Positions 26,701 to 31,363 of a stretch of DNA of 64,000 nucleotides are shown in pieces (within the stretch, counting starts at the first letter, position 1; each line of letters begins with the position of its first letter). A model generated the notes under the pieces. The model was not told where the DNA came from. It searched no databases and was given only the letters and a program-made list of their open reading frames with translations. The DNA is taken from contig NC_058130.1 in NCBI RefSeq assembly GCF_016433145.1, positions 708,556,629-708,620,628 on the forward strand. Direction: 5' to 3'. This DNA comes from Gracilinanus agilis (lineage: Eukaryota). A program made the position numbers and the translations under genes.

Positions 26701-29700
26701 ACAGTAACTCCAAATCGGACCACTTCCATTTCCTCCAATCCCATTTTCTGGACCTCTCAAATCATGGTAGCCATTCTAGTGAAAGAAAATCTTTGGCTGG
26801 TGGAGGGCTGCTGAAGGGATGTTTATGATGCCCCTCTCAATCTCTCCCTCACCCCTCCAAAGACTGACCAGGACCTAATCCCCAGGGAGGACCCCAGACC
26901 CCAGAAACTTACGGCCAGTGAGTTCAAAAAGTACCCGGTCATTGAGTCCCAATCTCAGCTCTGGCATGCCAGACAAGAATACCTTCAGCTTAATGGTGCC
27001 CACAATCTCACTCAGCAGCACACTCCCATTGGCATTGACCTGAACCAATGTGGGATTAGGTATCAGCAGGATATGGCAAAGGGTGGGAGGGGGTGAGGGC
27101 AGATCCCAATTCTCCCAGTTCCTTTCCCTTAACAGCAATTGCCACAGATGCTAAGTACCACCTTACCCCCCCTTCTACCCACTAGCAGTTCCTGACCCCT
27201 AGCAAGTCTTGGACTCTGATTGGTGGTCATTCTAATTCCCATCACTCCTACCCCCCCACTCATAGTAGTCTCCCAGGGGCTTACCAGTAGGTTGACAGAC
27301 TCAATCACATCAATGAAAACCTCATTCTTCTTATATTTGATACCCTCTGAACGCCAAGACACAGCATTGGTAACTGTTGGGGGCACCCGGGACTTGCCTG
27401 TCTCTAATTTGTTGCCCTGTTGGGTGATATACCTGAAGGAAGAAAGGGAAAGGGTCCATGATCTTACCTCCCATCTGAAAAGGCAGAACCCTCCTGGGGT
27501 AAGAATTAATATGAAAACAAGTAATATCACTGAATCATAGATTTAGAGCTAGAAGGGATCTTAATGGTTATCTAGTCCAACCCCATCATTTTATTGATGA
27601 GGAAACTAAGCCCAAAGGGGTTAAGTGCATTGTATCCCCAGCACCTAAGACAGTGCCTGACAAATACAATGATAGTGACTAGCATTTATCCTGGCATTTT
27701 AAAGTTTGTAAAGCATTTAAGAAATGCCTCATTTGATCCTCCCAATAATCCTGGGAGGTAGGTGCTATTATTATGATCACCTTTTTACAGATAGGGAAAC
27801 TGAGGTAGAAAAAGTAACTTACCCAGGATCATATGGCTAAGTAGCTGGGGCTACATTTGAACTCAAGACTTCCTGACTCCAGGACCTGCACTTTATCCAC
27901 TATGTTACCTAGCAACTGCCTTATAGTGGGCATTTAATATTAGTGATTACTTGCCCAAAGTCATAGATGTACCAAATAGAAGAGCTGGGATTTGAAGGAA
28001 GGCCTCAGACTCTAAACTCAATATTTTAAAATTTCTCTACCACACCACATCCCAGGATTATGAGCACTTTATAGTATAAAGTAGTTTTCTTTTTTCCCAT
28101 ACTAACCCTGTGGGAGGTGGGTAGTAAAAAATTTTATTATCCCCATTTTGAAGATGAATCAACAACCTCAGAGAAGGGAAGTGATTCAGTCAAGGTCAAA
28201 TGGCTGACAAAAGACAATAAACAAAGTGAGAACTCAAATGCAAGCCCACTGATTCCAATTTCAGGGTGTTTGATCCCATTAAGTTGCCTCTCTATTTCCC
28301 AGAGGATAGGATCATAGATCTAGGGTTGGAAGGGATCTTAGCAATCAGCCCATTTTAGAGATGAGGAAACCAAGGCTCAGCGATGTTAAATACCTTGTTC
28401 AAATTCACCCAGGGAGTAGGCAGTAAAGCCAGAAACACCTCTCTGGGCCCTAATTTCCCTATGCAAAATGAGAAACGAGAAGGAGAAAATTACGAATTCT
28501 AAGGGCCCTTCCACTTTTGATGTGTTTTGGCTCTAGGATTAGCCTCCTTTGTGCTGGAAGAAAGATTAAGGGCCTAGGTTAAAATCTGGATTCAGATACC
28601 CTCTAGCTGTGTGATCTTGGGCAAGTCACTTAACCTGATTGTCTAGCTATTGTTGCTCCTCTGTCTTAGAGTTGATATTAAGACTGAAGGTAGGGTTTGA
28701 GGAAGGAAGGAAGGAAGGAAGGAAGGAAGGAAGGAAGGAAGGAAGTTAGGAACAGGGGTATAGAGGGGTCCTGTGAGCTTTCTCCAGAGTCCTGGGGAAA
28801 TAACAATTATAGGGGCAGCTGGATAACTCAGTGGATTGAGAGTCAGGCCCAGAGACGGGAGGTCCTAGGCTCAAATCTGACCTCAGACACTTCCCAGCTG
28901 TGTGACCCTGGGCAAGTCACTTGACCCCCATTGCCCACCCTTACCATTCTTCCACCCAGGAGCCAGTACACAGAAGTTAAGGGTTTAAAAAAAAACCAAT
29001 TATATGTGGAGCCCCTGGGACCTGATGGACCCTAAGGATGCTGCTGCCCCCACCCCAGTCCCACTTACTCCTGGAGAATTTTGCTGTCTGTTGTTTGTGG
29101 AAAGCCAAAATCCATGAGTTCATCCAATAGCTCATAGACAATGACGAAATTGTCCCGGATGCTCTCTTCCTCTAGCTCCTTGAAATACTCAGAGAATACC
29201 TAGTGAATAAGGGAAGCAGGTAGGATTAGGAGAGGGTTGGATGATCAGTACCCTTCCTCCTGATAGGTTTATCAGGAAGTCAGGGGTTAGAAAATGGAGC
29301 TGGGGCTCTCACCTCAACAGCCTTGTAGAGGAAGGAGTACACCAGGGAGGCATTGGCATTCTTGAGGGTAGTGGCCACCACTGTTACCAATCTGGGGTCA
29401 AGGAAAAGGCACCAATATGGTAGGGTGGGGAAGTGAAAGAGGAAAACAGCCCTTCCACCCCATTTTCTTCCTGCTAATCAGAAGCCCTCCAAATAGGGTC
29501 CCTGCCATATAGATCATAGTCAATGTTAGCCCTTGACTTGCCTTGTGACATGGGGCACTTGACTCTCTTTGGATCCCCATTTCCCTCACAGTTCCAGCCC
29601 ACTGGGGACAGGTGAAGTCCATTCAGGCTCATGTTTGGGGGAGTGTGGCTTAGTGGAAAAAGCACTGGGGATTGGAAGTAATCAGAGGGCTTGGATCTGA

Positions 29701-31363
29701 ATAATCTGCAGCTGACTACTATGGCGACCCTCCTGGAGCCTCAGAAAAGCTTCTCTATGAAACTGAGGGGATTGACTAGAGCCAGTGGCTCCCAAACTTT
29801 TTTGGCCTACCGCCCCTTTTCCAGAAAAAATATTACTTAGCCCTCTGGAAATTAATTTTTTAAATTTTAATAGCAATTAATAGGAAAGATAAATGCACTT
29901 GTGGCCATCACTGCTTCCCTGGATGACTGCAGTACCCACCAGGGGGCGGTGGTGCCCACTTTGGGAATCATTGGTCTAGACAATCTCAAAGGCTCCTTCT
30001 ATTCTAAATCCTAGAAGCAGAGACCAAGGGCTCTTTGGAAAGTGGGGAAGGAAAAAAAGGTTTGGTGCAATGAAAAGAACATTGGATTTGGAATCCATTG
30101 CCTTGTTTCTTATCCCACTAGTGTGGGGACACCAAAACTTTTGTGTGACTCTGGCTAGGTCACTTCATCCCTTGGAGCCTTGTTTCCTTATCTGTAAAAT
30201 GTAGAAATGAGGGTGATCTTATCTCTCCTGCTCTCCTCCCAGGGCTATTATTATAAACATACAATGAAAAAAACATGTGGAAAATAATTTGTAACCATAA
30301 AAAAGGGCCTGAAGAGGCAACTAGGTAGTGCACTAGTCAGGAGGACCTGCATTCAAGTTTGGCCTCAGATACTTCTTAGCTGTGTGACTGGGCAAGTCAC
30401 TTAACTCTGATTGCCTAATCCTTACCGGGCTTCTGTCTTTGAAATTGATACTGAGAGAGAAGGCAAGAGTTGTTTTTTTGTTTATGTTTTCAGTTTTTTT
30501 TTTTAAAGGGAGGTGTTCTGAAGACACCAGATCAATGGTTCTAGGTCTGAGCTAAAGAGTCAGGAAGGCTGGGCAGACAAGGACCCGATTCACCTTTCCA
30601 AAGCCAGGAAACATGGAATCAGGCCCAAGTGGCTGTGGACAAGGCTTTAGAAACTAGGGGCAGCTCCACCTCCCTTTCCCCGCAAGGGCCTGGCAGTCGG
30701 AAGGATGCAGTAAAGGTTGCTATATTTGATCCACAGGAAGTGCACCCTGCCATGGGTCAGCAGTGGGGTCAGGGCTCCCTCTTCTTCCTTCTGCATCAGC
30801 AGGGGCATGAAGTGGTCAATCTCTGCCATGCTCACATCTCCCTTGTAGTTCCGGCAGATCAGGGGCTGGTCAGGGGGAGAGAAGTTGGGTGAGGTTCCTC
30901 CCCAATCCTAGCCACACCCCCTTCTCCTGCGCAGGTTCTGCACTTTCACCCCAACCTGGGGAGCCGGACTACCTGGTCACCTGGGTTGCGGGGAGGGGAA
31001 GGAGGGACCCTCTCTAGGGAAAAGTGCTGGAGTGAGGAAGGGCCCCCTCACAGAGATGTCTCTTTTCTTCTTCCCTCTTTCTTTCAGGCGAGCCTGTTTA
31101 ACTGCTGGACATCTGGAACAACGATGGGGCCCGAGGACATCTAGGACCTTTCCTCCAGCCAGATGAGGGGACTCTGGGCCCCGCAGGGAGTCCTGGCTCC
31201 TAGCTCGGGGCCTAAAGCCCAGCAGAAGTGAACCTGCCTGGGGGCTGTCTCCTCCCCCACCCCCACCCCCACCCCCACGGATTCTCCCACCCCAACACCT
31301 GAGAAAGCAGCCCTTTCTCACCTTCCCCTTCATGTCCAGAATGAAGACCGCAGAGGCAGACAT
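21596..31363 (-). CDS. AP1M2: AP-1 complex subunit mu-2 (mu1B), 12 coding exons, 423 aa
   Basis: Exons 31363-31322, 30865-30709, 29380-29313, 29199-29069, 27432-27285, 27039-26913, 25983-25841, 25732-25661, 24585-24427, 23952-23827, 21961-21886, 21618-21596, total 1272 nt. Motifs [55 protein letters not shown], ending DYQLRTS. Intron 2 is GC-AG with U12 signals. Synteny and sequence favour mu1B over mu1A. Confidence 0.96.
23709..23737. repeat. (TG)14 microsatellite in AP1M2 intron 10
   Basis: Perfect TG run. Confidence 0.95.
26166..26370 (+). mobile_element. Old hAT-Charlie (MER5-like) MITE inserted in a MIR tail
   Basis: TIRs CAGAGCTTCTTAAT / GTTAAGAATTCCTG and 8-bp TSD gactagat/aactagat. 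Related degenerate pieces at about 7455-7630 and 22810-23167. Confidence 0.7.
28701..28744. repeat. (GGAA)11 microsatellite forming the tail of a SINE
   Basis: Follows the SINE 3' end ...aagactgaaggtagggtttga. Confidence 0.95.
28812..28995 (+). mobile_element. Young opossum-type SINE1 with A-tail and TSD-like caattata
   Basis: ggggcagctgg...gagacgggaggtcctaggctcaaatc...ggagccagtacacagaagttaagggtttaaaaaaaaa. Related copies at about 22897-23075(-), 38555-38760(-), 51994-52183, 56264-56470, 56600-56810, 57960-58175(-). Confidence 0.8.
29381..30708 (-). other. U12-type (minor spliceosome) intron with non-canonical GC-AG termini, AP1M2 intron 2
   Basis: 5' splice site GCATCCTTCC (30708-30699), branch site TTCCTTGAC (29405-29397), and a 3' AG 17 nt downstream of the branch A with no polypyrimidine tract. 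Confidence 0.85.
29783..29973 (+). mobile_element. hAT-Charlie-type MITE (191 bp) inserted in a MIR tail inside AP1M2 intron 2
   Basis: 16-bp TIRs CAGTGGCTCCCAAACT / rc CAATGATTCCCAAAGT, flanked by a degenerate NTCTAGAN-type target (gactagag / gtctagac). Confidence 0.75.

Follow-up and report, generated by a model that had tools for sequence, protein, structure and literature searches.

Minor introns have already been catalogued in the mu1 adaptin genes. In the MIDB supplement (Olthof et al. 2019, PMC6717393), human and mouse AP1M2 are listed as minor-intron genes with a U12-type GT-AG intron (5' splice site ACT|GTATCCACC, branch-point sequence (BPS) TTTTCCTTAACC, scores 100 and 97.5), and AP1M1 is catalogued there as a minor-intron gene too. 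Described here is intron 2 of AP1M2, the gene for the epithelial mu1B adaptin, on the minus strand of a 64,000-nucleotide (nt) stretch of Gracilinanus agilis DNA (NC_058130.1, positions 708,556,629 to 708,620,628; the whole analysed stretch is called the window). This intron has GC-AG termini. Judged from its sequence, it is very probably the orthologue of the vertebrate mu1 adaptin U12 intron in a GC-AG form, removed by the minor spliceosome (U11/U12, U4atac/U6atac).

The closest described splice-site class is the "U12-type GC-AG" subtype of Sheth et al. (2006, PMC1557818), whose defining marks are a U12 BPS and a conserved GCATCCT motif at the 5' end. Four human, four mouse and one fly candidates were counted, and the LZTR1 case is conserved from human to mouse. 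The fly case is CG16941 (Lin et al. 2010). According to IAOD, GC-AG introns make up 0.20% of the U12 introns of Monodelphis and 0.61% of those of human. A preliminary description of the window had stressed the rarity of such introns. The rarity stands, as the set is very small, with about four members in human, but the class itself was already defined in 2006. A search of the literature combining AP1M2 or AP1M1 with U12 or minor-intron terms found no discussion of AP1M2 intron 2. Both the GC-AG minor subtype and the minor class of the AP1M2 intron were on record before; what is added is the GC form in marsupial AP1M2.

Boundaries and signals of AP1M2 intron 2

Exon 1 of AP1M2 lies near 31363, and later exons extend down to ~21900. 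The features at and around intron 2 are as follows.

30709..30865, minus strand: AP1M2 exon 2; 157 nt, encoding PLICRNYKGD...WIKYSNLY plus the first base of a Leu codon; located by tblastn with AP1M2 proteins
29381..30708, minus strand: AP1M2 intron 2; 1328 nt, phase 1, GC-AG termini, U12-type by its signals
30699..30708, minus strand: U12-type 5' splice site GCATCCTTCC; G at +1 (30708), C at +2 (30707), ATCCTT at +3 to +8
29397..29407, minus strand: predicted U12 BPS TTTTCCTTGAC; branch A at 29398
29392..29393, minus strand: proximal AG, predicted to be skipped; 6 nt from branch A 29398; would read TAT TGG TAA, with an in-frame stop
29381..29382, minus strand: predicted 3' splice-site AG; 17 nt from branch A, the bases before it being purine-rich and lacking a pyrimidine tract
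29313..29380, minus strand: AP1M2 exon 3; 68 nt, completes the Leu codon and continues with VATTLKNANASLVYSFLYKAVE; a normal GTGAGA donor comes next

Exon 2 shares 94-96% identity with its counterparts in Sarcophilus and Dromiciops. Its 3' end reads AGCAACCTTTACT, with the last base at 30709, and the intron opens with GCATCCTTCCGACTG, its G at 30708 and its C at 30707. At the other end, the intron terminates in GCCTTTTCCTTGACCCCAGATTGGTAACAG (last base 29381), and exon 3 opens with TGGTGGCCACTACC / TGGTGGCCACT at 29380. Joining the exons as T|TG gives ..WIKYSNLY-L-VATTLKNANASLVYSFLYKAVE, the sequence of the annotated marsupial AP1M2 proteins, the one difference being Y for H in WIK(Y/H). The closest GT upstream of the exon 2 end (30734-30733) shifts the frame, and the first GT downstream lies ~40 nt inside the intron; thus, no GT donor preserves the protein. 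The preliminary description had placed the GC-AG intron between these same exon ends and had likewise excluded a protein-preserving GT donor, and on both points the sequence and the marsupial AP1M2 proteins agree with it.

The 5' box GCATCCTT agrees with the U12 consensus /RTATCCTT at +1 and at +3 to +8, and the C for T at +2 is its sole deviation. A perfect TTCCTTGAC at 29405..29397 corresponds to the U12 branch-point motif TCCTTRAY, which is expected ~10-20 nt before the 3' splice site. The GCATCCT of the donor, together with this TTCCTTGAC, also matches the GC-AG subtype of Sheth et al. (2006), which is defined by GCATCC(T) at +1 to +7 and a suitably spaced U12 BPS. Traits of U2-type introns are missing: the base at -1 is T, +4 to +6 read TCC, and there is no polypyrimidine tract, pyrimidines amounting to 55% across the 20 nt preceding the CAG of the intron. 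The skipped proximal AG is present in Dromiciops and Sarcophilus as well. The U12 class had been proposed from the window alone, along with a skipped AG too near the branch site and the use of the AG at 17 nt with no pyrimidine tract; these details are found on the sequence as proposed, and the class assignment is strengthened by the orthologue in MIDB.

Either motif on its own is no rarer than chance. In the 64-kb window, 11 matches to RYATCCTT would be expected by chance and 7 occur; for TTCCTTRAC, 1.9 would be expected and 6 occur. The signal lies in their placement: both coincide exactly with the boundaries that the protein dictates, in an intron with an orthologue catalogued as U12.

The marsupial intron 2 and the MIDB-classified AP1M2 intron are at the same position in an alignment of the exons. 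When the exon 2 peptide was used as a query, the read-through open reading frames (ORFs) of many vertebrates were found to end in ..NLYCIL.. or ..NLYRIL... This read-through corresponds to G-Y-ATCCT at the exon end, the peptide being compatible with either T or C at +2. All matches of this search were short read-through ORFs from other vertebrates, with Gracilinanus agilis absent among them. The MIDB listing and the vertebrate read-through ORFs together indicate that intron 2 is an old U12 intron of the mu1 genes.

Other motifs are present in the vicinity. Another GCATCCTT occurs at 29034-29041 (minus strand), ~27 nt inside the intron after exon 4 and away from any splice boundary; words of this kind are fewer in the window than chance predicts. 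A pyrimidine-rich block, TTTCCTnnTTCAC...CCCCACCC, is found at 29421-29450 (minus strand), ~15-45 nt upstream of the branch motif, and is kept in three marsupials. This block may be a splicing enhancer.

Conservation and origin of the C at +2

The C at 30707 is found in contigs of two other runs and in other marsupial assemblies. The contig from run X24 (2535 nt, covering 30394-30900) has a single difference from the window, at 30511, and its C at 30707 is intact. The contig from run X25 (273 nt, 30512-30784) spans 30707 with zero differences. Loci found via annotated proteins in two separate assemblies of Sarcophilus harrisii and in Dromiciops gliroides likewise have ACT|GCATCCTTCC as the donor. 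The C at +2 is therefore common to at least three deeply diverged marsupial lineages and is not private to one species. In the tree of coding sequences (CDS), the window is marsupial, and its position relative to Dromiciops and the dasyurids has 42% support only.

The 3' end of the intron is GCCTTTTCCTTGAC(T)CCAGATTGGTAACAG in Dromiciops and GCCTTTTCCTTGACCAGATTGCCAACAG in Sarcophilus, and the distance from branch A to the intron end is 17 nt in the window and 15 nt in Sarcophilus. In a three-way alignment of the window, Dromiciops and Sarcophilus, the first 10 nt of the intron are invariant and the next bases have diverged. In the same alignment the 13-nt branch site GCCTTTTCCTTGA is invariant and the sequence is mostly conserved from there to the AG, while the adjoining intron has diverged. 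A contig from organism B has 5 differences at 29414-29446, with none listed from 29413 to the exon. Invariant U12 signals amid diverged flanks show that constraint on these signals persisted after the T>C change.

Outside the marsupials, the intron begins with GT in a turtle (L011), another eutherian (L002), human and mouse (the last two according to MIDB). As GT is found in both the turtle and eutherians, it is the ancestral state. However, the AP1M2 intron starts with GC in golden hamster (GCATCCGCCC, L010:1508-1629) and in bank vole (GCATCCACCC, L012:4758-4935), both of which have intact branch sites, TTCC(C)TTAAC. With GT ancestral, GC in marsupials and in cricetids implies at least two GT>GC events, one marsupial and one in cricetid rodents. 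The cross-species comparison that had been suggested for this site thus separates marsupials and two cricetids, with GC, from human, mouse, the other eutherian and turtle, with GT. The change itself had been taken as lineage-specific, a view that does not survive the finding of the same C in Dromiciops and Sarcophilus and, independently, in hamster and bank vole.

In bank vole, the GenBank model (P0212, L012) continues through the GC donor (..NLYCIHPMLGRMVATT..), at the cost of the N-terminal domain call, an illustration of how gene prediction can fail where a U12 intron is GC-AG.

Splicing of the intron and rival explanations

In other marsupials, use of the junction has indirect support. The RefSeq proteins of devil and Dromiciops contain NLYLVATT, as does the correctly spliced one of hamster. 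Antechinus flavipes has an intact, intronless AP1M2-like gene of 425 codons (L009:501-1778), which reads TTTACT|TGGTGG at the junction and clusters with Sarcophilus in the CDS tree. No poly(A) tail of this copy was found within the 500-nt flank. The Antechinus copy is a retrocopy, and as such a fossil of a properly spliced dasyurid mRNA. Partial evidence for the junction in Gracilinanus agilis comes from the RNA run X1: a 107-nt contig matches the window from 30777 on, stops matching exactly at 30709, and has 38 further letters that lie off the stretch. Another X1 contig, of 527 nt, leaves exon 2 at 30728. This alternative junction was rejected as chimeric; the continuation lies outside the window and starts at a GGATC|GATCC palindrome.

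In minor introns, the ATCCTT box of the U12 5' splice site is paired first with U11 and later with U6atac. The U at +2 is not base-paired but is touched by the protein SNRNP48, and recognition is driven largely by the duplex between U12 and the branch site. In AP1M2 intron 2, U11 and U6atac would pair with the intact ATCCTT box. Position +2 would be contacted by SNRNP48 and left unpaired, and since the rest of the site is optimal, a C there is expected to be tolerated. The perfect branch site would anchor the U11/U12 di-snRNP (small nuclear ribonucleoprotein). As the AG at 6 nt from branch A would be too close, the next AG, at 17 nt, would be chosen. By analogy, the GC site is probably spliced with somewhat lower efficiency than a GT site would be, yet clearly well enough.

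Some points limit the case for removal by the minor spliceosome. Dependence on this spliceosome in marsupials is argued from sequence and from the LZTR1 precedent, and the class was called on motifs and orthology. The 107-nt X1 contig gives the break at 30709, the exon 2 side of the junction. One rival explanation takes the intron to be a former U12 intron that has turned into a U2-type GC-AG intron and is spliced by the major spliceosome, with the U12-like motifs as relics. U12-to-U2 conversion is a documented evolutionary route, and GC-AG is a regular minor subtype of U2 introns (~0.5-1% of introns). However, the U2-type 5' splice-site consensus is MAG|GTRAGT, and ACT|GCATCC agrees with it at +1 and +3 only, which makes for a very poor match to U1. 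A U2 GC-AG intron is characterised by MAG|GCAAGT and a pyrimidine tract, whereas here the tract is lacking and the 3' end is purine-rich. Nor would relics be expected to retain a 10-nt U12 5' box and a 13-nt branch site that are invariant in three marsupial lineages while their neighbours decayed. Conversion is thus very unlikely. Still less credible is a consensus or base-call error at 30707 with GTATCC as the true site, for which the preliminary description had left room. The site is only one base off the eutherian consensus, and X24, the best DNA-like run, might be the assembly's own sample, but the X24 and X25 contigs have C as well, and so do Dromiciops and two independent Sarcophilus assemblies, so an error is hardly conceivable.

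The preliminary description had suggested that the GC may throttle mu1B output. A different question is whether the GC is itself adaptive, an attenuator in which a weaker minor 5' splice site makes the dosage of mu1B limited by, and responsive to, minor-spliceosome activity. In the P120 minigene, GT-AG minor sites outcompete a GC-AG site, and depletion of CENATAC affects the LZTR1 GC-AG intron (de Wolf et al. 2021, PMC8280824). The U12-type intron 18 of LZTR1 is retained in ZRSR2-mutant cells. Going by these cases, a GC minor site is functional but probably weaker. The GC state has also been kept for long in marsupials and has arisen again in cricetids. However, long retention and recurrence are equally expected of a near-neutral change at an unpaired position, and GT-bearing eutherian relatives have the same tissue-restricted gene. 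The argument for attenuation is moreover one of analogy. An attenuator of this kind therefore seems unlikely. It is rather doubtful, too, that the marsupial and cricetid GT>GC switches are independent instances of an attenuator held by selection, with mu1B dosage tied to minor-spliceosome capacity or to CENATAC-like factors. Near-optimal U12 splicing signals with a tolerated C at +2 are the reading preferred here.

Elsewhere in the window, CDKN2D and KRI1-like ORFs are found downstream of AP1M2. Coding exon 2 of CDKN2D, at 18884-19243 (minus strand), is 98-99% identical to a koala-named marsupial cluster representative and to Dromiciops CDKN2D, and the KRI1-like exons are located at 9000-17500. 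A run of N at ~35300-35500 is an assembly gap or a masked stretch and appears as X in the ORF list. No family was matched in an Rfam search of 21000-32000.

Implications and comparison with known systems

With AP1M2 intron 2, the few known GC-AG minor introns gain a well-dated natural example. It indicates that C at +2 is compatible with U12 splicing over long marsupial evolution, and that it arose twice in one intron. The known workings of the minor spliceosome are unaltered by this finding. Intron classifiers and gene predictors must be able to cope with GC-AG U12 introns, as the bank-vole model, which mis-splices the AP1M2 intron, illustrates. The case also helps in interpreting +2 variants in human minor introns, and the intron is a basis for a simple comparison of GC and GT efficiency.

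Compared with the U12 intron of human and mouse AP1M2 (and AP1M1), the marsupial intron is alike in its position after ..SNLY, its phase 1, the exon end ACT, the ATCC core, and a TTTTCCTTRAC branch site near the AG. It is unlike the human and mouse AP1M2 intron, and that of the other eutherian and turtle, at +2, which is T in these and C in the marsupial. Length differs as well: the intron is 1-2 kb in marsupials, through repeat insertions, and ~120-240 nt in human, mouse, the other eutherian and turtle. In the window, two segments of intron 2, 29781-29988 and 30353-30456, reach word depths of 10^4 to 10^6 in every run and are thus marked as high-copy interspersed repeats; they account for much of the 1328 nt of the intron, as compared with 122-240 nt in eutherians and turtle.

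The U12-type GC-AG introns of LZTR1 and Drosophila CG16941/SF3A1 share with AP1M2 intron 2 the GCATCCT motif, an optimal and suitably spaced U12 BPS, and a base of the upstream exon that is unsuited to U2. LZTR1-type introns differ in belonging to another gene, whereas the GC of AP1M2 is datable by comparison, from an ancestral GT and two separate GT>GC changes. U2-type GC-AG introns share the terminal dinucleotides only. They depend on a pyrimidine tract as well as a strong match to U1 (AG|GCAAGT), and AP1M2 intron 2 has neither.

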